A stretch of DNA of 64,000 nt from Eutreptiella sp. 'Long Island Sound 2002' (taxonomy: Eukaryota > Protista > Euglenida): positions 189,100,001-189,164,000 of the forward strand of contig OZ038378.1 in NCBI GenBank assembly GCA_964036045.1. The letters are read 5' to 3'. Below are positions 2,490-54,514 of this stretch, in pieces (positions within the stretch are counted from its first letter, which is position 1; every line of letters starts with the position of its first letter). Both the position numbers and the translations under genes were made by a program. A model generated the notes under the pieces. That model saw nothing but the letters and a program-made list of their open reading frames with translations, was not told where the DNA came from and did no database searches.

Positions 2490-4450
2490 AACGGGAAGCG
2501 GATACCCCGAAAAGGGACACGGGGACGTGCATGGTGCCGCTGATGCCCAGTCCTCCATGCTGATAAGCCTGAAACTTGACCGCGACGGAGGTGGTGTTTG
2601 CCCCGTTACTGTCGGGGCACAGGGTGGCCCCTTTAATGGGGATCCTCTACAAGAGAATGTGGTGGCCTGCGCAGATCACGCGCACCCCAGGCACAGCCTA
2701 GACCGTCACACAGGCCATCTGGGAGCACACGGGGAGACCCTGTGCTATTGGTCCGCTGGGCCGCGCCCTGCATGACTTCCGTAGACTCGGATGGAGCAGC
2801 CTGCGGGGGTGGTGGAGCAGGACAATGCCGCATACGGGAATCTCAGTACACCTCGTGCATGCGTCTAAGGAATATATGGAGCACCTGTTTCGGGAATCCT
2901 TGAGGGAGTACCACTTGGAGGCGATGGAGAAGCGTAGGCCCAGATTCTTTGGCGGCATGGGGGCCCACCTCGACGAGGACCTAACCCTGAGCGAACTGGC
3001 ACTGTGCGCCACGGAGCTGGACAAGTTGCTGCTTCGGGGGGTGATGGCGGGGGCTGTGTGGACTGCGGAGCGAGCACATCGACGAGGACTTTGCTAGAGT
3101 GCCCGCTGCCCCTATTGCGACAAGCAATCCCGAGAGGCTGAGGACCACCTCTTGTGGTGGTGTGAGGCCTGGAAAGCTGCCAAGGATCCATTCCTGCCAG
3201 AACTCATGCTGCTGGCGCGACCTCTCAAGCTGGGAGCACTGTTAGAATGGCCCCCGTGCCTTCGGTTTTGTGGACTATTGCCGGAGGTGGTGGTGAAGCA
3301 CAGTGCCCTGGCGTAGGGGCCAGGATGGAAGGAACACTGTCAGGAGATGAACAGGGTCTCAGGACACTGGGTCCCGGAACCGGGGGAAGACCCCACAGAG
3401 GCGTGTTGGCAGCGGGCGGAGCTGGCCCTAGCGGGACATCAATGGGCTCACGACGACCAAAATCCGCTGGAGGACTTTGTGCATCACCTGCACCGCATGT
3501 TCTTGGCGGTACTGCGAGCCAGAATGCAGCGAGAGGAGGAGGCTTGCCTCCTGTTTCCGGTGGAGCAACGTAAGGGGTCCCAGGAATGCTATCCATGGCA
3601 TCAATTGCAACCGCCCTTCCCAAGGCCGTGTCCAACGGGTTCGCTAGAGCTGGGACAGCTGCCCATGGACTAGAAATGGGGGCCCGACTTTTTGCCGGCC
3701 ATGTTGCGCTGGCTCTCGGAGCTGCAATGGCTACCAAGGGACGACAGCTTGCCGGAAATGCACCGACAAGTGTCTTTTCTGGAGTTGGCACTGGGTTTTG
3801 AGTCACATGCAAGGAGGCCTCTCCCACCCACCCTGCAGACCAGGTTCGTGGGTGGGGAGACGTCCCTGCAAGAAAAAGCCCGAGTCATGTAGTTGGCCGC
3901 CGGCTTGCTGGGGAGAGCGGCAGGGCGGGAGTCCATTCTCCCGTCGGGCTTCACCAATAGATGTTGGTCCCTGGTCCCGCTGGGGGCGGGCACCACGGCG
4001 GGAGTGAAGGGCAGGCCCATCTTCACAAGGCCGGCGGCAGTGTGGCACCACGTGCGGTGCTTGCAGCAATATAGCGCAACACGGTGGGCCCGCCAGCAGC
4101 AACCAAGAGTGACAGAAGCGCACCAGGCCACGGAAAGAGAGGTGCCCATGCAAAGGAGGAGCGAAGCGATCGGCGGGAGCGTACACAAGCGATTTTTATG
4201 CGGCCCGGTGATGCCGCCGGGAGCCAGAAGAGGCCCGCAGTACCGGGTGACCGACGCGGGGGACGCCACATCGGAGGCAGTAGGGAGCGGTGGGGCGGCG
4301 TTGTTTACCCCGCCACTGAAGTGCGCAATAGCAAGACGCCCTGAGCAGCGACCTCGGCTTCTACGCCTCTTGGTCTACGCGGCACACCAACACAGACAAT
4401 GTGCGTCCTGTGCGGCGGTGGGTAGGGGGGTACGGCAGGATTGTGTATAG
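2490..4450 (+). mobile_element. 5'-truncated, decayed non-LTR retrotransposon (LINE) ORF2 C-terminal region
   Basis: Read through stops: ...GPLGRALHDFRRLGW...RGVMAGAVWTAERAHRRGLC*SARCPYCDKQSREAEDHLLWWCEAW (zf-RVT-like CxxC..H..C knuckle at ~3107-3165)...VSFLELALGFE...QDCV*. Confidence 0.7.
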
Positions 4451-4861
4451 CGACCTTGTGGGCTATCAGACATCAGACATCAGACTTTTATGGACCGTCA
4501 TTACCCAAACCATAAACACACCTCCCCCATCCCCCCTTGTGGTGTAGTACACCCTCTCCCCCAATGGAAGATGCCCCCCCCCCCCCTTGTGGCCCTTCCC
4601 TAGTCCTTCCACCCCCCCCCCCCCCCCCCACTCATGAGTGCTTTCTTGCATCAGGAAGTATGGAAAATGATTCGGAAAATACCCCCCGCTTGGTGTTGTG
4701 TGTTTGTGTGTAGGAAGCATGGAAACTGCACCCACTCACTACACTCCTCGAGGTGTAGATTTTCGTTCTGTGGCCTCAACCCCAGCGTTGTAGGGCCATC
4801 ACACACCATTGCAAAGTAAACCAACAGATTTGCCGCATTTATAAGCATATGTCCTCCCACA

Positions 4862-4883
4862 GACACACACACACACACACACA

Positions 4884-4921
<38 letters not shown>

Positions 4922-4940
4922 GCGCACACGCACGCACACG
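4862..4940. repeat. (CA)n microsatellite
   Basis: Direct reading. Confidence 0.95.
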
Positions 4941-5254
4941 TTGACATAGCGTAGGCAATGTGGGGGTGCCCTTGCTTCAAGCCTTGGTATGGGGGGGGGT
5001 GGGGGTGCCTCTCCTTTCTTTACATGTTTTTCACCGGGGAGGGGGGAGACTTGAGAGAACTGCCGGGGGGGGGGGGCAGTTTAGTCACGGGGTTGGGAGG
5101 GTGTTCTTTTCTTTGTCTCACAGTTGTTTCTTTTCATGCAAAAAAACTGACAACAATAAAAATAATCATTTCACAAGTTGCAGGTGTGCCATGCCATGCT
5201 GTGCCGTGTTGTGGTGTGTCTCTGTAGGTCCCCGTAGGTCCGAAGCCGGTTAGA

Positions 5255-6135
5255 AGCCGCCCCAATCAATTTCGTAGCCCCCTCCCATCAATTTCATAGC
5301 CCCCCCCCATCGATTTCATAGCCCCCCCATCAATTTCATATGCCCCCCCTATCAATTTCATAGCCCCCTCCCATCCATTTCATAGCCCCCCCCACATGCA
5401 TTTCATAGCCCCCCCCTATCAATTTCATAGCCCCCTCCCATCCATTTCATGGCCCCTCCCGCATCAATTTCATAGCCCCCCCCATCAATTTCATAGCCCC
5501 CCCCCATCAATTTCATAGCACCCCCTCCATCAATTTCATAGCCCCTCCCCCATCAATTTCATAGCACACCCCCCATGAATTTCATAGCCCCCCCATCAAT
5601 TTCATATGCCCCCCTATCAATTTCATAGCCCCCCCCCATCAATTTCATAGCCCCCCCCGCTATCAATTTCATAGCCCTACCCCCCATCAATTTCATAGCC
5701 CCACCCCCATCAATTTCATAGGTCCCCCCATTCAATTTCATAGCCCCCCCCCCCCATCGATTTCATAGCCCCCTGCCCTATCAATTTCATAGCCCCTCCC
5801 CCATCAATTTCATAGCCCCCCCCCCATCCATTTCATAGCCCCCCCATCAATTTCATATGTGCCCCTATCAATTTCATAGCCCCCCCCCCCATCCATTACA
5901 TAGCCCCCCCTCCCCCCTATCGATTTCATAGCCCCTACCCCCCATCAATTTCATAGCCCCACCCCCATCAATTTCATAGGTTCCCCCCATTCAATTTCAC
6001 AGCCCCCCTCCATCAATTTCATAGCCCCCTGCCCTATCAATTTCATAAACCCCCCCTTATCAATTTCATAGCCCCCCCGCCCCCCAATCGATTTCATAGC
6101 CCCCCCCCCCCCTCGACTTCATAGCCCCCCCCCAT
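5255..6135 (+). repeat. Minisatellite, core ATCAATTTCATAGC plus variable poly-C (20-26 bp, ~40 copies)
   Basis: Direct reading. Confidence 0.95.
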
Positions 6136-6139
6136 TGAT

Positions 6140-7420
6140 TCACAGAGGGGTGTAGACCCCTCTTAGGAATTGGCGCGTGGGCACGCGCCAATTCCTAGAG
6201 GGGTGTAGCCCCTGTTAGGAATTGGCGTGTGGGCACGCGCTGATTCCTAGGGGGGTCTTATTTGGGGGGTCTAGACCCCCCAGATGATTGACGCATGGGC
6301 ATGTGTCAAATAATTGACGCATGGGCATGCGTCAAATATTTTGGGGGTTCTACACCCCCCAAATAATTGACGCATGGGCATGTGTCAATTATTTCGGGGG
6401 TCTACACCCCTCAAATAATTGACGCATGGGCATGCCTCAAACATTTTGGGGGTCTAGACCCCCCAAATGATTGACGCATGGGCATGCGTCAATTATTTTG
6501 GGAGTCTACACCCCCCAAATAATTGACGCATGGGCATGCGTCAATTATTTTGGGGGTGTAGACCCCCCTAGGAATTGACGCATGGGCATGCGTCATACAA
6601 TTGACGCATGGGCATGCGTCAATTATTTTGGGGGTCTAGACCCCTCAAATAATTGACGCACAGGCATGCGTCACCTATTTTCGGGGTCTAGACCCCCCAA
6701 ATAATTGACGCATGGGCATGCGTCAATTCCTATGGGGGTCTAGATCCCTCAAATAATTAACGGATGGGCATGTGTCAATTATTTTGGGGGTCTAGACCCC
6801 CATAGGAATTGACGCATGGGCATGTGTCAATTATTTTTGGGGTCTAGACCCCCCTAGGAATTGACGCATGGGCATGCGTCAAATAATTGACGCATGGGCA
6901 TGCGTCAATTATTTGGGGGGTCTAGACCCCCATAGGAATTGACGCATGGGCACGCGTCAATTATTTTGGGGGTCTACACCCCCCAGATAATGCGTCGATT
7001 GATCCATATGCGTCAATTCCTATGGGTGTCTAGACCCCCAACATAATTGACGCATGCCTATGCGTCAATTATCTGGGCGGTGTAGACCCCCAAAATAATT
7101 GATGCATGCCCATGCGTCAATTTTTTGACGCATGCCCATGCGTCAATTCCTACGGGGGTCTAGACCCCCCAAATAATTGACGCATGCCCATGCGTCAATT
7201 ATTTAACGCATGCCCATGCGTCAATTTCTAGGGGGGTCTAGACCCCCAAAATAATTGACGCATCCATGTGCGTCAACTATCTGGGGGGTGTAGACCCCCA
7301 AAATAATTGACGCATGCCCATGCGTCAATTATTTGACGCATGCCCATGCGTCAATTATCTGGGGGGTCTAGACCCCCAAAATAATTGATGCATCCATATG
7401 CGTCAATTATCTGGGGGGTC
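6140..7420. repeat. Palindrome-rich minisatellite (AATTGACGCATGGGCATGCGTCAATT alternating with GGGGTCTAGACCCC) whose orientation flips near 6995
   Basis: Loops read GGG left of ~6995 and CCC right of it. Confidence 0.9.
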
Positions 7421-8010
7421 ATTTGGGGACCCATGGGCACCTTTGGGGACCCATGGGCACCTTTGGGGGCCTACGGGAGCCTATGGGGGCCTATGGGGAC
7501 CTATGGGGACCTTTGGGCACCTTTGGGGACCTATGGGGGCCTATGGGGACCTATGGGGACCCCTGGGAATCTATGGGACCTATGGGGGCTTGTGGGGGCC
7601 CATGGGGGCCCATGGCGACCTATGGGGGCCTATTGGCACCTTTGGGGACCTATGGGGACCCATGGGCATCTTTGGGGACCCCTGGGAATCTATGCGACCT
7701 ATGGGGGCTTGTGGGGACCTATGGGGACCTATGGGTACCTTTGGGGACCTATGGGCACCTTTGGGGACCTATGGGGGCCTATGGGGACTCATTGGCATCT
7801 AGGGGGACCTTTTGGGACCTATGGGCACCTTTGGGGACCCATGGGCACCTTTGGGGGCCTATGGGGGCCTATGGGGGCCTATGGGGACCTATCGGGGCCT
7901 ATGGGGGCCTTTGGGGACCTATGGGGGCCTATGGGGGCCTACGGGGGCCTATTGGCACCTTTGGGGACCTATGGGCACCTTTGGGGGCCTATGGGGACCT
8001 ATGGGCATCT
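7420..8010 (+). repeat. 10-bp minisatellite (CTATGGGGAC / CTTTGGGCAC variants)
   Basis: Direct reading; it produces the Gly/Pro/Trp-rich ORFs in all three frames. Confidence 0.95.
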
Positions 8011-8296
8011 TTTTTTTTTTGCCACTTTCCCTGCTCACACATTTTCCCCATTTTCCCATTTTGGTGTTCAAAGTCTTTTTTACTTTTGTACTGCCATGTT
8101 TCTGATTGTCCAAGGTGGTTCCCCAATGATTTTTCAATTGTGTCCTCCCTTTTTGTTTTTTTCATTGGGGGGGGGGGGCAGATTTGATTTGGGCATAGTT
8201 TATTCCAAGTTCCTCTAGGCATTAGACCCCAGACCCACCTCCAATAGACAAGAATATCAGACATCTTCTTGGACAGACCGCACACACAACATCCCT

Positions 8297-8476
8297 TATC
8301 AGACATCAGACATCATACTTTATACACAATCCTGGGGTACGGCACTACTGTACCAGGGGGCACACCGGGCATCCTCGGCCTTCCGTGGCCTTGCACGGTC
8401 CGCGTGGTAGTCACGTCGGACGGCAGCGGGTACCCCGGGGGCTGGGGGCACACCGTCAGCAAAGCGACGTAGACAC
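8297..8476 (-). mobile_element. 3' end of a LINE related to the 2490-4450 copy; interrupted by the Mutator-like element and probably continuing after 14851
   Basis: Minus strand ends CAGGATTGTGTATA (QDCV*) like 4436-4449, then (GATGTCT)n tail. Confidence 0.55.
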
Positions 8477-8832
8477 GGGTCTGTAGTGAAACCTAGTAAA
8501 AATTTTTTTTTAAAAAGTTTTTTTTTTACTGGGTAACAGTTTACTAGGTAACACGTTTTTTTACTAGGTATTGGGAACCTAGTAAAAAAAAAATTTTTTT
8601 TTTTACTAGGTTTCAAAACCTAGTAAAAAAAATTTTTTTTTTTACTAGGTTTTCAAACCTAGTAAAAAAAAAAGTTTTTTTTTTACTTGGTTTCAAAACC
8701 TAGTAAAATTTTTTTTTTCTTTACTAGGTTTTCAAACCTAGTAAAAAAAAAAGTTTTTGTTTTTACTAGGTTTCAGAACCTAGTAAAAACAAAAATTTTT
8801 TTTAATAATGGGTTAATAATAATTAATAATTA

Positions 8833-11800
8833 AGGTAGCCACCTTGCCCACTTGTGGGCCACTTCTGATTTTGCCCCCCGCTCTGCAGCGGTGGGGCTCC
8901 CCGATACGGCAGGGGTGAGGTAGCCTATTTGCCCACTTGTGGGCCACTTCTGATTCTTCCCCCCGCTCTGCAGCGGTGGGGCTCCCCGATACGGCAGGGG
9001 TGAGGTAGCCACTTTGCCCACTTGTGGGCCACTTCTGATTTTGCCCCCCGCTCTGCAGCGGTGGGGCTCCCCGATACGGCAGGGGTGAGGTAGCCACTTC
9101 GCCCACTTGTGGGCCACTTCTGATTTTGCCCCCCGCTCTGCAGCGGTGGGGCTCCCCGATACGGCAGGGGTGAGGTAGCCACTTCGCCCACTTGTGGGCC
9201 ACTTCTGATTTTGCCCCCCGCTCTGCAGTGGTGGGGCTCCCCGATACGGCAGGGGTGAGGTAGCCAATTTGCCCACTTGTGGGCCACTTCTGATTCTGCC
9301 CCCCGCTCTGCAGCGGTGGGGCTCCCCGATACGGCAGGGGTGAGGTAGCCAATTTGCCCACTTGTGGGCCACTTCTGATTCTGCCCCCCGCTCTGCAGCG
9401 GTGGGGCTCCCCGATACGGCAGGGGTGAGGTAGCCACTTCGCCCACTTGTGGGCCACTTCTGATTTTGCCCCCCGCTCTGCAACGGTGGGGATCCCCGAT
9501 ACGGCAGGGGTGAGGTAGCCACTTCGCCCACTTGTGGGCCACTTCTGAATTTGCCCCCCGCTCTACAGCGGTGGGGCTCCCCGATACGGCAGGGGTGAGG
9601 TAGCCAATTTGCCCACTTGTGGGCCACTTCTGATTCTGCCCCCCGCTCTGCAGCGGTGGGGCTCCCCGATACGGCAGGGGTGAGGTAGCCACTTCGCCCA
9701 CTTGTGGGCCACTTCTGATTTTGCCCCCCGCTCTGCAGCGGTGGGGATCCCCGATACGGCAGGGGTGAGGTAGCCACTTCGCCCACTTGTGGGCCACTTC
9801 TGATTTTGCCCCCCGCTCTGCAGCGGTGGGGCTCCCCGATACGGCAGGGGTGAGGTAGCCACTTTGCCCCCTTGTGGGCCACTTCTGAACTTGCCCCCCG
9901 CTCTGCAGCGGTGGGGATCCCCGATACGGCAGGGGTGAGGTAGCCACTTTGCCCACTTGTGGGCCACTTCTGATTTTGCCCCCCGCTCTGCAGCGGTGGG
10001 GATCCCCGATACGGCAGGGGTGAGGTAGCCAATTTGCCCACTTGTGGGCCACTTCTGATTTTGCCCCCCGCTCTGCAGCGGTGGGGCTCCCCGATACGGC
10101 AGGGGTGAGGTAGCCACTTTGCCCACTTGTGGGCCACTTCTGATTTTGCCCCCCGCTCTGCAGCGGTGGGGCTCCCCGATACGGCAGGGGTGAGGTAGCC
10201 ACTTTGCCCACTTGTGGGCCACTTCTGATTTTGCCCCCCGCTCTGCAGCGGTGGGGCTCCCCGATACGGCAGGGGTGAGGTAGCCACTTCGCCCACTTGT
10301 GGGCCACTTCTGATTCTGCCCCCCGCTCTGCAGCGGTGGGGCTCCCCGATACGGCAGGGGTGAGGTAGCCACCTTGCCCACTTGTGGGCCACTTCTGATT
10401 TTGCCCCCCGCTCTGCAGCGGTGGGGATCCCCGATACGGCAGGGGTGAGGTAGCCACTTCGCCCACTTGTGGGCCACTTCTGATTTTGCCCCCCGCTCTG
10501 CAGCGGTGGGGCTCCCGGATACGGCAGGGGTGAGGTAGCCACTTTGCCCACTTGTGGGCCACTTCTGATTTTGCCCCCCGCTCTGCGGCGGTGGGGCTCC
10601 CCGATACGGCAGGGGTGAGGTAGCCACTTTGCCCACTTGTGGGCCACTTCTGATTTTGCCCCCCGCTCTGCAGCGGTGGGGCTCCCCGATACGGCACGGG
10701 TGAGGTAGCCACTTCGCCCACTTGTGGGCCACTTCTGATTCTTCCCCCCGCTCTGCAGCGGTGGGGCTCCCCGATACGGCAGGGGTGAGGTAGCCACCTT
10801 GCCCACTTGTGGGCCACTTCTGATTTTGCCCCCCGCTCTGCAGCGGTGGGGATCCCCGATACGGCAGGGGTGAGGTAGCCACTTCGCCCACTTGTGGGCC
10901 ACTTCTGATTCTTCCCCCCGCTCTGCAGCGGTGGGGCTCCCCGATACGGCAGGGGTGAGGTAGCCACTTTGCCCACTTGTGGGCCACTTCTGATTTTGCC
11001 CCCCGCTCTGCAGCGGTGGGGCTCCCCGATACGGCAGGGGTGAGGTAGCCACTTCGCCCACTTGTGGGCCACTTCTGATTTTGCCCCCCGCTCTGCAGCG
11101 GTGGGGCTCCCCGATACGGCAGGGGTGAGGTAGCCACTTTGCCCACTTGTGGGCCACTTCTGATTTTGCCCCCCGCTCTCCAGTGGTGGGGCTCCCCGAT
11201 ACGGCAGGGGTGAGGTAGCCACTTTGCCCACTTGTGGGCCACTTCTGATTCTGCCCCCCGCTCTGCAGCGGTGGGGGTCCCCGATACGGCAGGGGTGAGG
11301 TAGCCAATTTGCCCACTTGTGGGCCACTTCTGATTCTGCCGCCCGCTCTGCAGCGGTGGGGCTCCCCGATACGGCAGGGGTGAGGTAGCCACTTCGCCCA
11401 CTTGTGGGCCACTTCTGATTTTGCCCCCCGCTCTGCAGCGGTGGGGATCCCCGATACGGCAGGGGTGAGGTAGCCACTTCGCCCACTTGTGGGCCACTTC
11501 TGATTTTGCCCCCCCGCTCTGCAGCGGTGGGGATCCCCGATACGGCAGGGGTGAGGTAGCCAATTTGCCCACTTGTGGGCCACTTCTGATTCTGCCCCCC
11601 GCTCTGCAGCGGTGGGGCTCCCCGATACGGCAGGGGTGAGGTAGCCACTTCGCCCACTTGTGGGCCACTTCTGATTTTGCCCCCCGCTCTGCAGCGGTGG
11701 GGATCCCCGATACGGCGAGCGGGGGGCAAAATCAGAAGTGGCCCACAAGTGGGCAAAGTGGCTACCTCACCCCTGCCGTATCGGGGATCCCCACCGCTGC

Positions 11801-13003
11801 AGAGCGGGGGGCAAATTCAGAAGTGGCCCACAAGTGGGCAAAGTGGCTACCTCACCCCTGCCGTATCGGGGAGCCTCACCGCTGCAGAGCGGGGGGCAAA
11901 ATCAGAAGTGGCCCACAAGTGGGCGAAGTGGCTACCTCACCCCTGCTGCAGCGGTGGGGATCCCCGATACGGCAGGGGTGAGGTAGCCAATTTGCCCACT
12001 TGTGGGCCACTTCTGATTTTGCCCCCCGCTCTGCAGCGGTGGGGCTCCCCGATACGGCAGGGGTGAGGTAGCCACTTTGCCCACTTGTGGGCCACTTCTG
12101 ATTTTGCCCCCCGCTCTGCAGCGGTGGGGCTCCCCGATACGGCAGGGGTGAGGTAGCCACTTTGCCCACTTGTGGGCCACTTCTGATTTTGCCCCCCGCT
12201 CTGCAGCGGTGGGGCTCCCCGATACGGCAGGGGTGAGGTAGCCACTTCGCCCACTTGTGGGCCACTTCTGATTTTGCCCCCCGCTCTGCAGCGGTGGGGC
12301 TCCCCGATACGGCAGGGGTGAGGTAGCCACCTTGCCCACTTGTGGGCCACTTCTGATTTTGCCCCCCGCTCTGCAGCGGTGGGGCTCCCCGATACGGCAG
12401 GGGTGAGGTAGCCACTTCGCCCACTTGTGGGCCACTTCTGATCCTTCCCCCCGCTCTGCAGCGGTGGGGCTCCCCGATACGGCAGGGGTGAGGTAGCCAC
12501 TTTGCCCACTTGTGGGCCACTTCTGATTTTGCCCCCCGCTCTGCAGCGGTCGGGCTCCCCGATACGGCAGGGGTGAGGTAGCCACTTCGCCCACTTGTGG
12601 GCCACTTCTGATTTTGCCCCCCGCTCTGCAGCGGTGGGGCTCCCCGATACGGCAGGGGTGAGGTAGCCACTTTGCCCACTTGTGGGCCACTTCTGATTTT
12701 GCCCCCCGCTCTGCAGCGGTGGGGCTCCCCGATACGGCAGGGGTGAGGTAGCCACTTTGCCCACTTGTGGGCCACTTCTGAATTTGCCCCCCGCTCTGCA
12801 GCGGTGGGGATCCCCGATACGGCAGGGGTGAGGTAGCCACTTTGCCCACTTGTGGGCCACTTCTGATTTTGCCCCCCGCTCTGCAGCGGTGGGGATCCCC
12901 GATACGGCAGGGGTGAGGTAGCCAATTTGCCCACTTGTGGGCCACTTCTGATTTTGCCCCCCGCTCTGCAGCGGTGGGGCTCCCCGATACGGCAGGGGTG
13001 AGG
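8833..13003. repeat. 85-bp tandem satellite, ~49 copies, with an internal inverted block at 11717-11946
   Basis: TGAGGTAGCC recurs at 9001 and 9086 (period 85); the translations repeat every 85 aa. Confidence 0.97.
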
Positions 13004-13020
13004 TTTGTGGACATGACGTC

Positions 13021-14373
13021 TTGGCCGCAGTGTGCCATGCCCTGACTAATGGCCCAGGCGGCCCTACTGCCCAATTGCAGCATGTTGAGTCATTGCTCCA
13101 TGACGAATGGGAACGACCACTTGACGTGATCATTCCAAGTTCTGGGTCTCAACAATATAAGCTAGAGGCACGCCATTTGAGGGATGTTTACTCAGAATCT
13201 TACGTCACAGATACCGCCGAGATCGTTGTGTATTACTGGTGGTCCGCTCGGACAGCTTTGAGTGCGGACTGGGATGTTATGGGTGTGGCGTGGGTTGTGC
13301 GTGACTCATTGTGGAATGTGTCGGCTTTACCGTTGGGTCGTAGGGAGGTGTTGGCTGAGTCATGGGCGCGGCGTACTTTGAACGCGGCGTCCATTGATAT
13401 GATCTATGCGCCCCCCTTGCTCGTGGCGCAGATTTATAATAAGCGCAATGCACATTGGGTGCTGCGCTTGTTGTTGGTTTCCCCAACACGTACTTTCTTG
13501 TGCCTCGTGTTCGATCCGCTGTGTCACAAGCCGTACATAGCGGGTGCAAACACCGAGGAGTTGGCAATAGTGAACCTCATTGCCAAACAAGAAGGCATTA
13601 AGGCAAGGGCGCTGAAGAGGTGGGACAAGTTTTTGGGTGAGTTCGGCAGTGTAGCTTTTGCTATAGCCCCCCTCTACTCCACCTTCCTACATCAGGACGA
13701 CGGTGTGAGCTGCCATCCTGCCTGCCTTATGATGCTACATTGCCTTTTGTCTAGGCGTGTTGTCAACGGTAGCATCCAACTTCCACAAGACAGATTGTGG
13801 TTGTTGCGTGAGATTGCACAGGCAGCTTTGCACTATCGCAGTTCTCCGCCTGCCCCCCCTATTGAGACCACACCCAGTTGGGCCTTGGCACGGATGTATG
13901 CTACGCCCTATTGTTCACCCAGCCGTTCGTCGTGCTTTTTTTGCGACGACACAGCCCACATCACGTGCCCTGAATGTGGAGTTTATCAGTGTGCCCTGCA
14001 TGCTTCCGGTTTCTGTTCCACGGAGATATGTGTGGCATTGCGCAAATGGAATGTGCAATTTACTGCCACACTGGCATGCATTGTGTTGGCATTCGCCTTG
14101 GGTGACCGGGTTGTGGTTGACAAGCCGCCTTCTGTAGATGAGGTCCGTCCAAAGGTGGTGATCCGTGGTGAAGAATTTTTTGTTCCAGAGCATTACCCCA
14201 AAGATGCCTCTGGGAGATTGGAGTATGACAAAAATCTAATCAAAGAGTTGGAAGAAAAGACCACGGGCGTGATTCGCAACATGTGCAAGCACAACCCTCC
14301 CTCTGCACAACCCACCTACAAAGACAAGAAGTCGGACCTCATCTACAAGCGCGTGTTTTGCGACTTCATATAA
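13021..14373 (+). CDS. Ulp1/SENP-like (peptidase C48) cysteine protease with a Cys/His zinc-finger-like segment; 5' end missing or spliced
   Basis: NAHWVL (His, 13453), VFDPL (Asp, 13513), HQDDGVSC (Gln 13693, Cys 13711) in C48 order; CFFCDDTAHITCPECGVYQCALH downstream; 450 uninterrupted codons, no ATG until residue 87. Confidence 0.7.
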   Translation: MAAVCHALTNGPGGPTAQLQHVESLLHDEWERPLDVIIPSSGSQQYKLEARHLRDVYSESYVTDTAEIVVYYWWSARTALSADWDVMGVAWVVRDSLWNVSALPLGRREVLAESWARRTLNAASIDMIYAPPLLVAQIYNKRNAHWVLRLLLVSPTRTFLCLVFDPLCHKPYIAGANTEELAIVNLIAKQEGIKARALKRWDKFLGEFGSVAFAIAPLYSTFLHQDDGVSCHPACLMMLHCLLSRRVVNGSIQLPQDRLWLLREIAQAALHYRSSPPAPPIETTPSWALARMYATPYCSPSRSSCFFCDDTAHITCPECGVYQCALHASGFCSTEICVALRKWNVQFTATLACIVLAFALGDRVVVDKPPSVDEVRPKVVIRGEEFFVPEHYPKDASGRLEYDKNLIKELEEKTTGVIRNMCKHNPPSAQPTYKDKKSDLIYKRVFCDFI

Positions 14374-15819
14374 AGCACGCGTGTGTGCACCTCATATATG
14401 TATATATATATTTATCATATAAAAGCTCCTTCTTTTCTTGAGCCTCATTTTATTTTTGCTGACCTTGCAATACACGGTTTGGCCCGGGTGGGGCGCCACT
14501 TACACAAGTGGCCTGGAATAGACCAGGGGGCACCATGCCCTTAAACATAAATACCACCTACCGTTGACCCCCCCCCCCCCCATAAACTTGGTTTTTTTTG
14601 TTCAAATTCAAGTCCAAATTTGTCACTACCTAGTAACCTAGTAAGGGAAAATTTTTCAAAATTTTTGCTTTTTTTACCTAGTAAAAAATTTTTTTTTAAA
14701 ATTTTTTTTTAAAATTTTTGCTTTTTTTACCTAGTATAAAAATTTTTTTTTTAAAAAAAATTTTTTTTACTAGGTTTTGCTACATTTTACTAGGTTTTGC
14801 TACATTTTACTAGGTTTTGCTACGTGCATACTAGGTTTCACCAAATGCCCCGTAGACACCAGCAAGCACAGCCGCCAGGCGCCACACGGGAACGGCCCCA
14901 CAAGCGAGGGAGGGTGGACACGACCTCCCCCCCCCCCGCCAGGAGGATGCGCATACGGTCGCCGAGCGCCACACGGCATGGGAGAGCAAGGACGGAGGTG
15001 ACATAACCCCCCAACCCCAGAGGTTGTGGCTCAGGCGAGGCCGCCTACCGCGACCCGAGCGGGCACCAAAGGCAGGGACACAGGCCGTCAGGACTGCACC
15101 ACCTGTCTTGTAAGCTGGCGCCTCAGGCAACCGCTGGGGGCCTGGACCCATGCGTGCCTCCCTCTTTCATATTGTTTTTTCTTTCCTAAACCCACTTGTA
15201 CATACACATGTGTCTTGACATCGCACAGTGACCTGAATTGAGTGGAATCGAACACAGGCGACGAAGGTGCACTTATTTGGGTGTGAGGCTGTACTAGAAA
15301 CCCATATGTATGATGCTCTGGGCATCATCGTTGTGAAAACAGAGTAAGCCACGATACCTGAGATAACCCCCCCCTCCCCTGAGCGCACAGGCACAAGTGT
15401 TCACACGGACCGGAGGGGTTGGTAAGATATATGAAGACATCCAGATAAATTAAGATATAATACTCAGATACTTTGTGGGAACACAATAAGCAGCAGGGTA
15501 GGCAGTAGAATAGTCGAGGATACTTGGTCCCATGAGTGGATAATCCCCAGTCTGCGGGCTCATTTCTTAAATCAAGCAATTCCTCTTTCACCCGGGCTGT
15601 AGGCAAGCACCTAGTACTCTAGCTTTGCGTAAATGATCTCAACCACATCAGCCCTACTTATTGGAATCAAGCTGACGGGGGAAACAATGCACATTTCAGG
15701 TGTTCATGTGGGAACCCATGATCGTATGTAGATGGATATTGATCACACGGTCCATATGGTCTGTTACACGTTGGTGGCCTTCGCCATGAATCTAAGCTAA
15801 ACCTCCTGCACCTCAAGGT

Positions 15820-44963: not shown

Positions 44964-46001
44964 CGCGGGGGGGCCGCCGGGACCGGACCCTTTACGCCGA
45001 CCCCCCCCCCCCCCCCTCCCTGCCGGGTTTTGGCCCGGAAGTGCCGGACCATGGGCGCCGAAGGCGCCCTAAGGAAATTTTGCTTGACTTAGTAGAGGGT
45101 GAAAAATTGGGTTTTTGCCCCATGTGTCTATACTCAAAATACTCAGTTTTTTTAGGAGAACCCAATAGTGGATGAAAACCAAATTGGACCAAATATCTAT
45201 GCCACTCCTGTGCAGAGGTATATCAGAGATGGGCCCTACCCTAGTGGTAAAGCAGTGCCCTGCAACTTGAAAGTCCTGGGTTCAAACCCCAGTGGTGTCA
45301 ATCTGCAGGACCAGAGGCAGGTCCAGGGATACCATGGGAAAATTTTTTTTGCTTTTTTTTGTTTCGACTTTATCCTCTTTGTTTGGGACCCCCGAGAATG
45401 CACGATTTCTGCCCACTTGTGGGCCTCCCAGAAGGCAGGGTTTAGGCATCCAATTCTCATTTTGTCCCCCTTGGTGATGTAGCATTATCGCCCACTTGTG
45501 GGCCCCACCTATTTTGATTTTGTCCCCCTCTCTTTGGGGATCCCCGAGAATGCAGGGGTGATGTAGTATTTCCGCCCACTTGTGGGCCTCCCAAAAGGCA
45601 GGGTTTAGGCAACCAATTCTGATTTCGGAACGGGTTTCGGAACATACATCAACTCTGCCCTAAAAACAAGCATGGTTTGGCCTGGGTGGGGCGCCACTAG
45701 CAATAGTGGCCGGGAATGGACTCGGGGGTGCTATGCCCTTAAACAAAAGTACCACCTACCATGCCCCCCCCCCCCCCTTGTTTCAAAAAATTTTCTCCAA
45801 CATACATGCTTCGAAGTGATTACCGCGTTGAGGCGGTCATCTTATGCCATGTTTGTCAGGCTATGAAGCCCCCCCCCCCCCTTCTTGGCAGCCCCCCTCC
45901 CCCCCCCCCCAGACCCAGCCCCCCCCCCCCCCCCCCGCCCTGAAAATGGTTCGAGAGTGGGAGGGAGTCGGCGTATGGCCCGTCGCTACGGCCCCCCCGT
46001 G
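44964..46001. mobile_element. 1038-bp non-autonomous TIR element with 8-bp TSD (hAT-like)
   Basis: CCCACAAG at 44956-44963 and 46002-46009; imperfect ~40-bp TIRs CGCGGGGGGGCCG..TACGCCGAC / GTCGGCGTA..CGGCCCCCCCGTG; the paralog has a single CCCACAAG at 52419-52426. Confidence 0.85.
45229..45300 (+). pseudogene. tRNA-derived sequence (Cys-like GCA), probably non-functional or a SINE head
   Basis: A-box-like TAGTGGTAAAGC, perfect T arm CTGGG-TTCAAAC-CCCAG, CTGCAAC loop; poor acceptor and anticodon stems. Confidence 0.55.
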
Positions 46002-46254
46002 CCCACAAGTGAATATTTGGGGGGAAGGGGGCTCCTGTCATCGTCTTTGTCAGCAATACCCAGAAGTGAATATTGGGGGGGAAGGGGGCTCCTGTCATTG
46101 TCTTTGTCAGCACTCCATTGCCTCACACTGTACCGTCGTTACCAGGCAAATCGATCGGCGGCACAAATGAGCACCCATACCCATGAAGCATCCCATGTAC
46201 ATGCACTGGTGTCGAAGGATGATTGTTTTATTTTGGTGCAAAACAACAACAGCT

Positions 46255-46380
46255 GCTGCTGAAAGTAGCATTTCATCGTCATGGTGGAAAGAATCCAGTT
46301 GGACAAAGTGGAGTCAGCAGGCACCGAATCCGATCTGGCAAAATGCAAGCATTCCCGCTGGGGCGAACACGATTGTCGTT
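46255..46380 (+). pseudogene. Decayed SRCR pseudo-exon
   Basis: RIQLDKVESAGTESDLAKCKHSRWGEHDC versus [29 protein letters not shown]; a stop follows. Confidence 0.8.
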
Positions 46381-46770
46381 GTGCTGCTGCTGCATAAAAA
46401 AGGGCGAGACGTTTACCAATGCACATGGGGATGACGGAATGTAGTTGGTAGACACTGTCTGCGAATGATAGACGTGGTCTGCAAATTGTAGTCACAGTCA
46501 GCTTGTTGTACCTTACGCCCCCCTTGTACTTCCCTCCCCCCTGAAAATCCCCCCCCTCGTTCGATAGGCCACAGAGTGCCTTGGCGTCTATCAGGCACCA
46601 AGCGCCGCATTGTTGAGGTGATGTTTGGGGTGTTCAGACGTCGCTTTGGTGCTACATGGGCACATTTGACCCCCTCCCTGCCCCCATACCACCAAGGACT
46701 GCGGGGGGAGGGGTGCCAGCATCATATTTGCAGTGCAGAACCGCCCCAATGCTGCTTTATTGTCACGCAG

Positions 46771-46932
46771 ATGTGGACTGCATCAGCAGCTGGAGCCCTT
46801 GGTCAACCTGCACTCAAACATGCGGTGGAGGAACGAGAACTCGTATACTTACCATTACCACACGTCCTTCCGGGGCTGGAACACGGTGCCCGGCAACCAA
46901 GGAAACCGAAACCTGCAATACTCAGCCCTGCA
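46771..46932 (+). CDS. Exon: thrombospondin type-1 (TSP1) repeat, phase 1-1, 162 bp
   Basis: CACGCAG|AT..CCCTGCA|GTATG; DCISSWSPWSTCTQTCGGGTRTR..C..ETCNTQPC. Confidence 0.93.
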
Positions 46933-47015
46933 GTATGACCCCCATGCATGTGCATTTCTGCCAGCATCATATTTGCAGTACAGAGCCGCCCCAATGCTGC
47001 GATATTGTCACGCAG

Positions 47016-47177
47016 ATGTGGACTGCATCAGCAGCTGGAGCCCTTGGTCAACCTGCACTCAAACATGCAATGGAGGCACGCGAACTCGTATACTTACCAT
47101 TACCACACATCCTTCCGGGGCTGGAACACGGTGTCCGGCAACCAAGGAAACCGAAACCTGCAATACTCAGCCCTGCA
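47016..47177 (+). CDS. Exon: TSP1 repeat, phase 1-1, 162 bp
   Basis: Follows an 83-bp GT-AG intron; same motif. Confidence 0.93.
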
Positions 47178-47557
47178 GTATGACCCCCATGCATGTGCAT
47201 TTCTGCTCGGGGAAGCTCAACGCTCACCCAGTGTGCCGAATGAGGCACGGATTGTGCATGCGTCTTCATTTTGTTGTGGCCAAAGCCCTTCCCATCCCGT
47301 TTCGGATATGGAAACAGACCCCCTGCCAAACTGTCAAAAGAAAGAAGCACGGCAGTACAGCAGACGACACCCAGGGTTTTTGAATATGTCTCCACTGACA
47401 AAGGAACGATGCAGACATTTTCTTGGAAGTTTGAAGGAAATTGGCATTGAGAAATGCAGAAATAAGTTTTTGCGGATGCGATGGCATCTGCGTCACAACG
47501 GGGCAAGGGAAACAAAAGTCGTCGTGGCGCTGGAGACATAAGGGACATGCGATGTAG

Positions 47558-47632
47558 CGCAATGCAAGCACTCCGGCTGGGGCAAGCACGATTGTCGTCA
47601 TAATGAAGATGCTGCTGTGCTTTGCACCACAG
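47558..47632 (+). CDS. Candidate 75-bp phase 1-1 mini-exon encoding only the SRCR C-terminal part
   Basis: TAG|CG CAA TGC..ACC ACA G|GTCTG; [23 protein letters not shown]; weak acceptor. Confidence 0.4.
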
Positions 47633-48325
47633 GTCTGTAGGGCATGCTCCTCGGTGGAAAAAAGTATTGTATCTAAAGAACAGCTCGGGGGGGCTAAACC
47701 GCATCGGTACCACACTCAACGCTACATTGGTCATGACAGGGCCTCTCCCAATGTCCTGGAAACTCATCATTTCGTGTAACAGGCTGTGGAGGTCATGTCA
47801 CATCAGTCCTACACACGCCTGTGGCGGGCCCGGGTTGGTGCCCGCTCTGAGGTTTCTTATGTCCCAATAACATCAGGGATTCAGCGTTGGGTCATATATC
47901 GCACTACGTCGATCAAGTCCAAGATGGTGGTGGGGGGAAAGGTGGCAGCGATTACCCCATCTGTGGTTTGTAGATGCTAGCGGGTGTGTGTCTGTGTGTC
48001 TGTATGAATACATTTTTTTGCAGTTTTTTTTTTTTTGCATTTTTTTTTGCATGTTTTCGCCTGATGTGTAGTTGTCCAACAGCGGGGAAGGACTCTATTC
48101 TATGAGGTGTTCCACATGCAGTAGAGGTTGAAATCACCCCGATCACACCATTTACACTCTCATTTGGTGGGGTTATCCGGGTACCATAGCCCAATGTATG
48201 AAATTGGATGTTGGGAGCTGGGGTGGGGCTCGGGGCGTGGTCCACCCGGGCAATGTGCATGGGGGAGTATGTGGAAGGGCCAAGAAGGCTCGAGCCCGGA
48301 GGCCCATTGTGTTCCATTTCTCCAG

Positions 48326-48637
48326 GTTGCTGCAACAGCGTGACCATTGCAGGGGCCTCAGATGTCCAATCCACGAGGATGGGCCAGTTCACGAAGGTTT
48401 TGGGGGTCACCAAGAACCACCGGCCAGTGTACAAGAATGCCCACGCCCAGTACCTTTACTATTGGATGGCGCCCCATTATCAGGCCTGGCACGTTGGGTC
48501 TGATTACAATTCAGTCAGCGCTGGTGTGAGAAGCAAACCAAACGAGAGAACAGTGTGCCCAGTGGACGCTACACCGCCTTGGCTTGAGTATTTCCGCAGT
48601 CAATGGCAAGACAGGAGTTCTATCACGGCAGATTGCG
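48326..48637 (+). CDS. Exon: unassigned ~104-aa extracellular-type module, phase 1-1, 312 bp
   Basis: CCATTTCTCCAG|GT..GATTGCG|GTATG; open, symmetric, CCNSV..RPVYKN..YLYYW..WHVGSDY..CP..W..ITADC. Confidence 0.8.
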
Positions 48638-51069
48638 GTATGTTCATGCCGGAGGTCCGAGAGGGGGAAGGGGAGACGCGTGGGGATTTTACCCTAGGCA
48701 TGTGGATCCCACCCACCGTCGGCCTACAGCCGCTGTCCGTATCACTTGGCACATCCACAACCGGTTGTTGGGTCGAAAATCCTAACTTGAGAACCCATAT
48801 TTCAAGCCAGCTCCTGCAGGCCTGGTTCCCACAGTCACCAAATTCCAACACTCACATGTCCTGTGCATCTTGCATGAATTGATTGGAAGTAGGAGGTCCC
48901 CCCCCTCCCCTCACACCCACCCCCTACGTCCTCCTGTTCAAAGTCGTCTGAAAGTCACTGTGTGTTGACTGCCAAAAGAGTATCAACCATGACGGCTTTT
49001 TGTGGCTACTGTCTAATGTTGCCTTCATTGTGATGCAACTGGGGTCCCCCCCTTCATTGTGGGGGACCTCATCATCTCATGGAGTGTGCGTACCCCTTAA
49101 TCTCCTTTCGTGGAACACAACTCACAAACCCAACAAACACCCTATACCCAACAATTCCAAACCCAAACAAGAAGCATCCAACAGGGGCCTTTGTGCGGAC
49201 AAAAGTATGGGCACCGCGGTCACCAGGGCTTGCCTTCGAGCAGGGGGAGGGAGGGGGAGGGGGGGAAGGGGGCAACCTCCTCCTTGCTACCCCAACAAAA
49301 TCAGTGTACAGCCTTGCTAGGGTGTGCTGTGATGTGCTGCGCAAGGCGTCGTTTGGCCAAGAATGAGTGAGTGGAAATTTTTTGAAGTGATGATATATGC
49401 GGCCTCCTGTGTTTAACAGAGATCATCTGTTTGAAAGAACTCGCGGAAGGAGTCAAGAGCTGGTCAGTTGCCTAGTTGTTGGCAACAGGGTTGGTGGTTA
49501 GTCGGAAAGAAACCCCCCTCGCCGATCCCACCTCAAAAGTTTTCCTGTCTACCTTTGACTCGAGGGAGCTCCCCCTCATATGGCGTGTTTCTTGGGCAGC
49601 AAGAAGGATTTTCCTACCGGTGATTTTAGCCCTGGAAACCAGGATGAAGTCCCAGCCTTTGCTAGTTGCAGGCAATTCTGTATTACCTGTCACGCCATGG
49701 TTGACCTGCCCCTCCCCACTGTCGAATAGCGTCATCGAGTATGGGAAGAGATATGTTCACTGCTCTTACGATCCTGGTAGTCTGCTTTCATGTGCATCGT
49801 GCTGGTCAATCTGTGGAAAAATGCTAGTTGTGCGCCACAGTGGACAGGGCTTCAGCTGGGCATGTCATGGTTGGTGTCGCTGCATTTGTTCATGGGGCGT
49901 AGCCGGGGGTGTCTTTTGCGAGTGGCACTGACGTTGTGGTCGGTGTTGTCTCCTGTTGCACCGGCAACCAAATCAGTCCCAGCATCCGAGTCCTGATGGG
50001 GCTGTGTCTGCCATCGATGACCGTGTCCCCCAGTTTGTGGTTCACTGGTATAGTGGCGAGAGGCCAATAGGCGCCGCCAACGGTAACCAAACCAGCAGCA
50101 TGGCCTCGTGCCAAACCCCTTCCGCCTCCGCATGCACGCATACACTTAGGACAATGGTGTCTCCCGCTCACTAGCGCTCTAGCGAGGTCCGGTCACTGTT
50201 GATACTCCGCTCGGCCTTGGAACCGGGCAGTCCTTTTGTTCAACCTCGTGGCTAGGGAGGGAGGGCCTGCTCCTGCATGAGGCCCTGTCCCATCCCCACC
50301 GCCCCCCCTTCCTCGGGACCTCCAGCAAATAGCCAGTCTCGGGAGGTACTCCGCGTCCTAACCAAGCCCCCCCCCCGTGACCGTGTTGGTAGTTATCCCG
50401 CTCTTCTGTGCCCTCACCCTTCCCTCCCAACCTCTAGAAGACTGTGTATCTGCCGTCGTCATTGGTGTTAGGCATCATCAAGGATGCAATTGGGTCTGTT
50501 GCAGATTGTGTGCCTCGGTGTTGGGGCTTGCTGCTGCGCACACTTTGCACTGTGGGGTGCTCCATGCAACAGCCTACGGCAGTGCTCTTGCACCGCCATA
50601 ACGAAGCTTTCCACTCCGTGCTCTCCTTGCGGCCCGCCAGCACGTTTGTCACCTACCACAGCCTACGGCACAACATCCCCATTTGTTTTGGCGACCGACT
50701 CGTTTGTGTCCATTTTTGTTCTGGTTGGGTGTCCGTGTGTGTTTGTTTTCAAGTTCCGTAGTTTCTCTTTCCGTCCGTTATTATTATTATTTTTTGTTAG
50801 TGTTGGTATTTCCAATGTTGAAGAGAGGGGGCTTTGTGAGGTTGCCAAATCCAACGGCGTTCAACGGCTGGGGTCAAAAATGAGCATACGTGTAGTGGTA
50901 TCTAGTTTCACTATTTGGTGCTTGGGTTGGGTCTCTACTCACGCCAAAGGCATTGTCCCAAGGCCTGCGTGACCTTACATCACTCGTGCGACTAGGTCCT
51001 AACCTTCGGTTGTCTAGTATCATAGATGCTTAGAGTGCTGACGATCCCCGAACCCCACTGAACCGCTAG

Positions 51070-52420
51070 TGGGTGGGAGATCCCACCGTGCCTATTTGTG
51101 CAAGGGGAAGGGGGAGGGGGGGGCACGCCCAGTCTCATCACCGGGTGGCATCGGGTCCTACTCTCTCTTCCCCGGGCGCTCGTCAGCGCGCGCATGGCGG
51201 CGTTGTCCCACCATGGTGTTGTGTTGGTGGGTCCTTGCAAGTTGACAGGCACTACTAGGCGTCATGCTTTGTTTACCACATGACTCCAGTACTGTGCAGC
51301 GCCCAGTGATGGGTCACCCCCGGCCCTACAAGGAGCCACAGAGGCCCTAGTGGGTACGCCTGCATGGCAGTAGCGTCTGTGAGGAGGGCAAAGCCATCCG
51401 GCGGTGCTCCCGCCGCTTGGGCAAGGCGGTTGAGCGCCTAGTTAGGTCATTGCTGCCAGCGATGAGCACAGTTGTGGGCGCGACGGGGTGGGTGTCGGGC
51501 TCCCACAGGAGGGGCAAGTTGAGGGCACGTGCGCTCTCCCCTCGCCATGTTGGCACGCCATGCAATGGGTATGTTGCAGCCACCCTCAGTGTCCAATCTT
51601 GATAGCTGTCATGGGGTTGGATCTTGATATTAAATGGGGCAATTTGAGGTCACACACGCTATCCACTCGCCACGCCGCCAGGCCATGCAACAAGTAGTCC
51701 AGTGCTGACGGTGGTCACCGTGTTGGATGCGGATGTTAAACGGTTGGGCTGGTGGGACAGTGGCGGGCTGATGGCATAGGGTAGTGAGGCCTAGAGGGCC
51801 CGCATTGCTGCGGGGCCTAGGACGGGGTGGGCTAGCCCACCCACCACCACTACTGCTACACTACTCCTTTACACGCCGCTGGAGGCACGGGGGCAGAGCC
51901 ACTACCTTCCCCGGCATAAACGGGGCCGGACAGGGTTAGTAGGGCGCCTAAGGGCATGTCGGCATGGTGGCAGAGGCCATCCCATGTGCAGCACTGAAGG
52001 TAGCACCCAATAGAAGACCGTAGCCAACCATCCATTAGCACGTGCAAGCCGTAGTTGACGCGGCCCGTGTTGGAAGAACAGGGCTTGAGCTTGTTTAAGG
52101 TGGGTTGGGGCGGCTAGACAACGCCCATGGTGGTGCCAATCACGCCAAACAATGCCACAGAAGTGGCACTACAGGGGCAGCTGTCAGTCTTGCGGGGTCT
52201 ACAACTTGAGGACCCGGTAGGCAAAGGCCCGTTTGATGGTGAGCATCAGGATCATGGCGCCCTCCACCAAGGCCTTGAAGTCGGTTGCTGTAGGTCCCAT
52301 GAGGTCAGCACGGGGGCCTGCGGAGTGCGCTCCGGCGATGGTCATGTCATACACTGCATCCCGTCCCATGTGGGGGTCGAGCATCATGGCCCTCTGGTAG
52401 TATAGCACCACGCGGTTGCC
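51070..52420 (-). mobile_element. Decayed retroelement-like remnant, paralog of 42905-44960 without the two TIR insertions
   Basis: Colinear similarity; empty insertion sites near 52085 and 52419. Confidence 0.55.
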
Positions 52421-52619
52421 CACAAGTGAATATTGGGGGGGGAACGGGGCTCATGTCATTGTCTTTGTCAGCACTCCATTGCCTCACACTGTACCGTCGT
52501 TACCGGGCAAATCAATTGCCGGCAACAATGAGCACCCATACCCATGAAGCATCCCATCTACATGCAGTGGTGTCGAAGGATGATTTTTTTTGTGCAAAAC
52601 AATAGCAACTGCTGTTGCT

Positions 52620-52745
52620 GTAAGTAGCATTTTGTGGTCATGGCAGGAAGAACCTAGTTGGACAAAGGAGAGTCAGAAGGCATAGAATCCGATATGGCAA
52701 AATGCAAGCATTCCGGTTGGGGCAAACACGATTGTCGTCCTGCTG
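52620..52745 (+). pseudogene. Decayed SRCR pseudo-exon, paralog of 46255-46380
   Basis: [28 protein letters not shown]. Confidence 0.75.
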
Positions 52746-54431: not shown

Positions 54432-54514
54432 GTATGAACCCCATGCATGTGCATTTCTGCCAGCATCATATTTGCAGTACAGAGCCGCCCCAATGCTGCG
54501 ATATTGTCACGCAG

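Follow-up and report, generated by a model that had tools for sequence, protein, structure and literature searches.

A young element, very probably of Mutator type and shortened by internal deletion, that carries an 85-bp satellite and a probable Ulp1-like transposase remnant in a euglenid genome

A transposable element that contains a long satellite array and what looks like a peptidase gene, without a transposase, raises the question of whether it has captured a gene of its host or has lost most of its own. Such an element is present in a stretch of 64,000 nucleotides, here called the window, from the euglenid Eutreptiella sp. 'Long Island Sound 2002' (assembly GCA_964036045.1, contig OZ038378.1, positions 189,100,001 to 189,164,000 of the forward strand). 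A first-pass annotation of this DNA had described a complete Mutator-like element (MULE) with a satellite and a separate SUMO-protease-like gene, comparable to the Ulp1-carrying KAONASHI and CUMULE elements of plants. Comparison with related copies elsewhere in the genome leads to a different answer, according to which the feature is very probably a young and non-autonomous copy that arose by internal deletion within a Mutator-type family of 8-9 kb elements in the host genome.

The element occupies positions 8477-14850 (6,374 bp) and is bracketed by an exact 9-bp duplication, CGTAGACAC, for which control windows in the flanks, shifted by 9-27 bp, agree at only 0-8 of 9 positions. Its terminal inverted repeats (TIRs) are imperfect and 22 bp long, with 17 of the 22 positions identical between the two ends, both of which start with GGG (end A, GGGTCTGTAGTGAAACCTAGTA; end B, given as its reverse complement, GGGCATTTGGTGAAACCTAGTA). 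Within these ends lie subterminal arrays that fold into hairpins: on the left, at 8491-8803, ~6-7 units of 42 bp with the structure ACCTAGTA(A)n(T)nTACTAGGT form perfect hairpins (fold z = -9.0), and on the right, at 14628-14828, the same 8-mers occur with A/T runs and a 20-bp triplet (fold z = -4.7). In all of these respects the sequence reads as it had originally been described. The end-core 13-mer GTGAAACCTAGTA has 1,008 matches in this genome of 2.28 Gb and its reversed control has 144, so that the signal is well beyond chance; many of the 13-mer matches form plus/minus pairs separated by 0.1-11 kb. From these, a family sample of 17 paired-end loci and four longer copies was considered, the duplication count being made over 21 members including the window copy. 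The asymmetric A and B ends have the same layout in all sampled members, and the proposed search for other elements with these termini and 9-bp target-site duplications (TSDs) recovered perfect duplications, each time of differing sequence, in 17 of the 21 members, while two more fit after a one-base shift or with 1-2 mismatches.

The insertion site gives a consistent picture. The element sits inside a copy of another repeat, for which there are at least 641 candidate copies, and five paralogous copies of this repeat (L023-L027) align at 85-88% across the joined flanks, with the target 9-mer present only once. The two flanks therefore join into a pre-insertion sequence in paralogues, but an allelic empty site, which had also been sought, was not found in the assembly, where the best other matches to the flanks are paralogues at 91-96% identity.

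Members of the family range from 163 bp to 8.75 kb and have common ends; their right-hand part is kept to a variable length, and satellite adjoins end A in nearly all of them, in numbers from ~1 to more than 45 units. In the window copy, the ~4.2 kb of 85-bp satellite noticed in the first reading corresponds to positions 8833-13004 (period 85, 49.0 copies, 94% matches). To the right of this array, positions 4527-6374 of the window element are equivalent to positions 6890-8748 of the L019 element, with 98.3% identity, and a deletion of ~5.1 kb has fused the satellite to the last 450 codons of a far longer open reading frame (ORF). Consequently, the single intact ORF of the first-pass annotation turns out to be a truncated 3' remnant that begins at the deletion junction: the frame at 13021-14373 is open for 450 amino acids from a TTG, has no ATG and directly abuts the satellite. 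Of 5,074 candidate loci for the same 450 codons, at least 94 were scored as genomic copies, and the open frame of some extends up to 1,117 amino acids. The window ORF is 98.9-99.1% identical at the protein level to the tails of L018 and L019 and 99.6% identical at the DNA level to the longer copies, which argues that the window copy is very young; this closeness is also sufficient to account for a frame that is still open, so that selection is unnecessary as an explanation. Among six young copies, 30.5 non-synonymous and 13.5 synonymous changes were counted, and the resulting ratio of 0.67, based on only 44 changes, is uninformative on constraint.

The features of the window copy, with the interrupted host repeat on either side, are as follows.

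8334..8476, no strand: left half of the interrupted host repeat, from paralogue alignment.
8468..8476, no strand: left 9-bp target-site duplication CGTAGACAC, a single 9-mer in the paralogous empty sites.
8477..8498, plus: terminal inverted repeat, end A GGGTCTGTAGTGAAACCTAGTA, with the same end in 20 other members.
8499..8832, plus: subterminal region A, with hairpin units ACCTAGTA(A)n(T)nTACTAGGT as putative transposase-binding sites (z = -9.0); in sister families the arrangement is alike but built on another 8-mer.
8833..13004, plus: 85-bp satellite, 49 units, the internal array of the family, expanded here in comparison with ~18 units in L019 (repeat analysis and family comparison).
11717..11954, minus: inverted satellite block of ~2.8 units (~238 bp), from self-comparison.
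13003..13004, no strand: internal-deletion junction, where the array meets the equivalent of position 6890 in L019, the reference copy of 8.75 kb; ~5.1 kb is absent, including the DNA-binding and DDE parts.
13021..14373, plus: stop-free 3' transposase remnant of 450 amino acids, equivalent to residues 668-1117 of L018:1668-5018:- (98.9% identical), with no start codon of its own.
13111..13860, plus: probable Ulp1/C48-like cysteine-peptidase domain, with candidate residues His145, Asp165, Gln225 and Cys231 of the 450-residue remnant.
13912..14025, plus: Cys/His-rich zinc-finger-like segment (Pfam zf-HIT, 16.9 bits, below cut-off).
14137..14370, plus: conserved C-terminal tail, 57% identical over 79 amino acids to L037 and the best-predicted part of the structure model, with a predicted local distance difference test (pLDDT) score of 80-93.
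14478..14562, plus: conserved non-coding piece with palindrome CCACTTACACAAGTGG, 87% identical to the sister family copy L036 (L036:7646-7732); coordinates mapped indirectly, from the offset of the L019 element alignment and a reading of the window sequence.
14621..14828, plus: subterminal region B, with ACCTAGTA/TACTAGGT motifs, A/T runs and three copies of the 20-bp unit TTTTACTAGGTTTTGCTACA (z = -4.7).
14829..14850, minus: terminal inverted repeat, end B (reverse complement GGGCATTTGGTGAAACCTAGTA), from end comparison.
14851..14859, no strand: right 9-bp target-site duplication CGTAGACAC, from sequence.
14860..15180, no strand: right half of the interrupted host repeat, from paralogue alignment.

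To what kind of transposon, then, does the family belong? The Pfam family PF10551 (MULE) is absent from the window copy itself, and the longer copies that had been suggested as a check, in which a MULE transposase stands where the window copy has satellite or deletion, were indeed found, with matches to PF10551 that are sub-threshold. This family is the sole or best Pfam match in six related proteins with 34-100% mutual identity (15.8-25.2 bits, E = 2.3e-5 to 0.019), namely L018 (E = 2.3e-5, 25.2 bits), L035 (6.7e-5), L037 (9.4e-5), L036 (1.6e-4), L020 (1.7e-3) and P0002 (1.5e-3), the last being a 44%-identical protein from public data that also has a weak match to PF00872 (Transposase_mut, 14.9 bits). 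Across families, alignment A3 shows no variation in the motifs DGTG, SDG and C-x2-H, and the CYWH motif aligns with FWCYWH of L058, a canonical MULE of the same genome (P = 0.01). The Cys clusters downstream of the DDE core are also invariant and give a weak PDB profile match to the Cys-rich domain 1v5n (E = 0.026), and Pfam returned no SWIM zinc finger in the transposase proteins. An N-terminal Cys/His region of the transposase gene is preserved in L019 and L035, and stop-free ORFs reach 1,117 amino acids in L018 and 1,425 amino acids in L036, a member of a sister family, with the Ulp1-like part at the C-terminus of both.

In view of these PF10551 matches and invariant motifs, and because the 9-bp duplications lie within the range of 8-11 bp known for MULEs (PMC6446971), the element can be assigned to the Mutator type with high confidence, as far as sequence comparison can tell, and the original proposal of a Mutator-type element in a protist is borne out. 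Several points weigh against this assignment: every PF10551 match is below the Pfam gathering score of 27.6 bits; a fully intact autonomous copy of the window's family was not seen among the 53-121 scored of many thousands of candidates; and L035 has one frameshift, L018 is without its N-terminus and L019 contains a 2.2-kb extra piece. The TIRs, at 22 bp, are short for a MULE, the range reported for TvMULE being 20-38 bp (PMC6446971). It is conceivable, although very unlikely, that the element lies outside Mutator proper, in a different superfamily that makes 8-9-bp duplications (Merlin, hAT, P or Rehavkus-like), a view for which the sub-threshold level of the MULE matches also speaks. Merlin makes 8-9-bp TSDs, a length that fits the element, and it is reported from Discoba (PMC8101967), but the IS1016/IS1595-like DDE Pfam family matched none of the transposase ORFs; more generally, MULE (and Transposase_mut) is the sole transposase family matched in the six proteins, with no IS1595/Merlin, hAT or P match, and the DGT ... 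SDG ... CxxH signature is invariant in the proteins of the family. Rehavkus likewise combines a 9-bp TSD and one long ORF with a minisatellite near one end (PMC6446971), yet it is itself treated as a Mutator relative in the same source. By description, to which this comparison is confined, Rehavkus has its minisatellite before the 3' TIR and occurs in arthropods and annelids (PMC6446971), whereas here the array is located 5' of the ORF. A zinc finger is common to both; that of Rehavkus is of the PHD type (PMC6446971), and the finger-like segment of the window ORF is not recognised as PHD.

Two observations were made alongside this comparison. The genome harbours an abundant canonical MULE family distinct from the window family, with PF10551 scores of 72-76 bits, ORFs of ~1,007-1,039 amino acids and 739 first-look candidates (L058:3148-6171 (+), L059:2650-5766 (+)). 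The extra piece of L019 (L019:3246-5440, element 3059-5253) is located inside the transposase gene, has a 119-bp direct duplication at its flanks and is open and in frame for ~600 codons.

With the transposase at hand, the nature of the 450-residue remnant can be addressed. The Ulp1-like part is in frame with the transposase, as its C-terminal portion, in L018, L019, L020 and L036; L037 (family E, 40% identical in the core) is without this part but has the last 79 residues in common, so that the domain is to be seen as an insert, with the DDE/zinc-finger region before it and a conserved tail after it. In a protein atlas feature search, which uses language-model features, the domain alone obtained a score of 0.95 with 187 common features, and 30 of 30 named matches were Peptidase_C48, while the whole window ORF was placed with C48+PHD clusters of chordates and cnidarians (0.83). 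A profile-profile comparison by hhalign with 12 C48 domains of the same genome brings His145, Asp165, Gln225 and Cys231 into register with HW, DS, Q and DCG (P = 0.005), at a hhalign probability of only 6.8%, and homologues at 43-66% identity retain these candidate residues. Between families A and B, the ratio of non-synonymous to synonymous divergence (dN/dS) is ~0.15 for the domain, where the proportion of synonymous differences (pS) is 0.66, and 0.12 for the DDE core, with pS of 0.64-0.73 overall. In a low-confidence model, the predicted secondary structure has a helix that begins just after the Cys and a strand order compatible with the C48 fold. The Gln-to-Cys spacing of six is the one typical of Ulp1 and the SENPs, and the predicted strand order, together with the helix after the Cys, agrees with the papain-like fold. 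Taken together, these sequence features indicate that the C-terminal domain is probably a Ulp1/C48-like cysteine peptidase.

This view has to be held against a series of searches that point the other way. Pfam searches at E up to 10 on the window ORF, its sub-segments and the L036 domain gave no C48 match (PF02902) and only the sub-threshold zf-HIT; PDB searches, whether made with individual proteins or with the profiles A1, A2 and A3, gave no link to C48; the AlphaFold models are poor, with pLDDT of 37.7 from a single sequence and 56.1 from a 67-row alignment; and Foldseek (pdb) and VIA-align (pdb_via_wide) on these models returned helical-hairpin noise and no C48 match. Genome-wide, PF02902 detects 46 places, none of them in the window's family, and a BLASTP comparison of the long ORF with the C48 ORFs encoded in this genome found nothing. 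Whole-library phmmer and a profile word search retrieved only the same family, mostly as fragments without Pfam annotation, and no bridge to C48. A lineage-specific transposase domain whose His/Asp/Gln/Cys pattern resembles Ulp1 by chance would explain these empty searches and the low hhalign probability. It is nonetheless regarded as unlikely, given that the atlas search on the domain alone named Peptidase_C48 throughout, that the residues align in register and persist in diverged homologues, and that the Gln-Cys spacing and the predicted strand order agree with the peptidase family and its fold.

Even if the domain is a peptidase, it might still have been acquired as the first-pass annotation implied, that is, as an independent and intact Ulp1 gene captured from the host by a KAONASHI/CUMULE-like MULE lineage without a transposase of its own. 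The window copy taken in isolation would allow for this, as it is without the DDE region and its ORF is open and Ulp1-like by indirect evidence, and plant MULEs with ULP1 are documented (cited in PMC2836005). However, the same 450 codons constitute the in-frame C-terminus of ORFs of 1,117-1,425 amino acids in L018, L019, L020 and L036, the window ORF begins at a deletion junction without an ATG, and no BLASTP similarity to the C48 genes of this genome was detected, which makes such a capture highly improbable. Because the longer copies and a sister family carry MULE-domain matches, weak yet consistent, that are fused to this tail, the sequence is not a captured host gene of the KAONASHI/CUMULE kind. 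Thus, the description of a SUMO-protease-like gene without a transposase stands in so far as this copy is without the transposase core and its ORF is probably Ulp1-like, judging from the atlas features and the residues in register, but what was called a gene is the C-terminal 450 amino acids of the transposase. KI-MULE (KAONASHI) and CUMULE likewise have Mutator-type ends, 9-bp TSDs and a Ulp1-like coding sequence inside. In those elements, as Hoen et al. in 2006 and van Leeuwen et al. in 2007 are said to have described, the ULP1-like gene is separate and resides in elements without the mudrA transposase, whereas here the domain is part of the transposase and stands alone in the window copy through internal deletion. 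The supposed KAONASHI/CUMULE-type cargo is accordingly a domain in frame with its transposase.

The closest precedent is found in animals, in which Ulp1 (+PHD) domains have been reported from Mutator transposases of hydra and lancelet and Ulp1 domains from Ginger1 transposases (Bao, Kapitonov and Jurka 2010, PMC2836005), and not in KAONASHI/CUMULE. As in those proteins, the C-terminal part of a DDE transposase bears a fused Ulp1-type domain, with a zinc-finger-like segment after it; the present family differs in its euglenid host, in a domain too diverged for PF02902, in a further conserved tail, in a built-in satellite and in the A/T hairpin arrays. A selected Ulp1-like fusion in a Mutator-type transposase would extend to a protist what had been described only in animals. 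The literature searched contained no description of this family, and the published chromosome-level assembly of Euglena gracilis lists 32.7% of the genome as unclassified repeats, with MULEs and satellites unnamed (PMC11252322). A second multi-copy ORF of the present genome, of 1,182 amino acids, has a genuine PF02902 match of ~31 bits and no BLASTP similarity to the window family (L032:4461-8006 (+), L033:2076-5621 (-), L034), and it may represent another peptidase-carrying repeat.

The origin of the window copy can thus be summarised, and its behaviour tentatively outlined. Cut-and-paste insertion into a copy of another repeat generated the 9-bp target duplication; both 22-bp ends and both subterminal hairpin arrays have been retained, and a ~5.1-kb deletion from the satellite into the transposase gene removed the DNA-binding and DDE parts and left the last 450 codons. 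Any movement of this copy would then need transposase in trans, which would be expected to bind the repeated ACCTAGTA 8-mers, these being putative transposase-binding sites because 8-mers and end sequences co-vary between sister families. The full protein would be a single polypeptide with an N-terminal Cys/His DNA-binding region, a MULE DDE core (DGT ... SDG ... CxxH) and a Cys-rich finger, followed by the Ulp1/C48-like domain, the second zinc-finger-like segment and the conserved tail. Since purifying selection on the peptidase-like domain matches that on the DDE core, this domain presumably serves transposition, perhaps through deSUMOylation while DNA is being cleaved and repaired or afterwards, a role suggested for the Ulp1 domains found in Mutator and Ginger1 transposases of animals.

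The co-variation behind these putative binding sites is seen in L036, whose 1,425-residue ORF is 57% identical and which belongs to the ACTGAGTA family: its ends, GGGTCCGTGGTAAAACTGAGTA and GGGTATTTGGTAAAACTGAGTA, are homologous to those of the window element, and in comparison with the latter the 8-mer is altered in parallel at the ends and at the subterminal sites. Repeated subterminal binding motifs are a property of Ac/Ds, En/Spm and Mu elements, in which, as here, short motifs occur in both orientations in both subterminal regions and differ between related families; in the present case the motif pairs are split by (A)n(T)n into perfect hairpins, and their role as binding sites is putative. 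Ends and 8-mers that vary together with the transposase across sister families amount to a natural experiment on transposase-DNA recognition.

The remaining question concerns the satellite, for which a 23-mer has 90,816 exact matches in the genome (control 0), corresponding to at least 7.7 Mb, and 0 matches in a metagenome scan. It had been suggested that the transposon lineage of the window spreads this satellite; the family does carry it through the genome, but the association is not lineage-specific, as at least five diverged families and some free arrays contain it. The proposed count of arrays inside and outside the termini covered the 14 arrays within the initial 14.2 Mb of contig 1 and was likewise divided: three of the 14 are in elements of the window's family, and six lie beside comparable (A)n(T)n hairpin arrays whose motifs differ (ACTGAGTA in L052 and L057, TTACACGAC in L049 and L054, CGACTTACGC in L050 and L051). 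The rest consists of three short fragments without hairpin arrays, one complex case and one 11-kb diverged 169-bp higher-order array with ordinary flanks. This last array, at C1:2445189-2459600 (L046, L047), comprises at least ~11 kb of the 169-bp version, with ~73-81% identity to the unit and no hairpin arrays, and represents either a free array of greater age or the origin of the satellite.

In the families with different ends, of which there are at least five, the satellite is always located between end A and the ORF. Consensus units across families are 96-100% identical, save for one short array at 75/85 positions, and the consensus is identical in L019 (family A), L057 (B) and L051 (D); on average, units differ by 3.1% inside an array, by 3.9% when arrays of a single family are compared and by 4.3% across families. 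Every family segregates at the same four positions, and there are no family-specific variants. By comparison, families A and B agree at ~68% in their coding DNA, whose synonymous sites have reached saturation. Because the units are near-identical between families and have polymorphisms in common while synonymous sites are saturated, neutral vertical descent of the satellite is excluded. The explanation that appears more plausible than others is that the arrays are kept uniform by exchange between them, through gene conversion or template switching in gap repair.

A functional role would offer a different explanation, with the satellite as an exchangeable 5' module (tandem promoter, enhancer or regulatory monomers, or a landing pad for a host factor) whose identity is kept by selection, in analogy to the monomer arrays of mouse L1. 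If this were true, the elements would need the satellite, which would be retained or swapped between families while transposase genes diverge to saturation. The constant position of this 85-bp unit across five or more families, its near-identity against diverged and saturated coding DNA, and the two small palindromes per unit, with modest fold z of -2.0 and -2.5, can be read in this sense. On the other hand, copy number varies from ~1 to more than 45, arrays begin in differing phases and tolerate local inversion, and free, diverged arrays also occur; the lack of family-specific variants and the common polymorphic positions fit exchange or concerted evolution better, and the functional module is therefore considered possible but the less likely of the two. 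Exchange between arrays, as the preferred explanation, would mean that several transposon families spread a satellite of 90,000 or more units, which is homogenised across these families; this bears on the origin and uniformity of satellites. Transposon-borne satellites are known from Tetris/DINE-type elements in Drosophila and from bivalves, where satellites derive from miniature inverted-repeat transposable elements; there, too, an internal array travels with the element, expands and contracts, and is also found as free arrays, whereas here one near-unchanged unit is common to families with transposases that are 40-57% identical.

Some further observations relate to the satellite and its surroundings. 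Long minus-strand ORFs across the array, of up to 972 amino acids, were considered as coding sequence and rejected, a stop-free 85-bp GC-rich unit being expected in ~1 in 8 cases on one strand by our own estimate. The palindrome CCACTTACACAAGTGG downstream of the ORF resembles the palindrome CCCACTTGTGGG of the satellite unit, and a 99-bp fragment of the 85-bp satellite is present in the window at 45490-45588. Just left of the insertion, positions 8077-8336 contain a separate dispersed repeat of ~260 bp, with copies that are 94-96% identical and 1,101 first-look candidates; palindromic tandem repeats of 26/52/78 bp with the core TTGACGCATGCCCATGCGTCAA lie at 7007-7420 and are followed by 58 copies of TGGGGACCTA at 7424-8005. 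Further to the right, at 46200-62000, repeated blocks ~8.0 kb and 6.4 kb apart contain 245-bp tandem units. In the genome at large, the spliced-leader 24-mer of Euglena gracilis has 5,458 matches with up to 1 mismatch (control 0), for example at C1:29492-29515, a result that was taken to place the host with Euglena; the matches are spread over the chromosomes, tandem clusters being only part of them, and may be genes for spliced-leader RNA or retroposed cDNAs that bear the leader.

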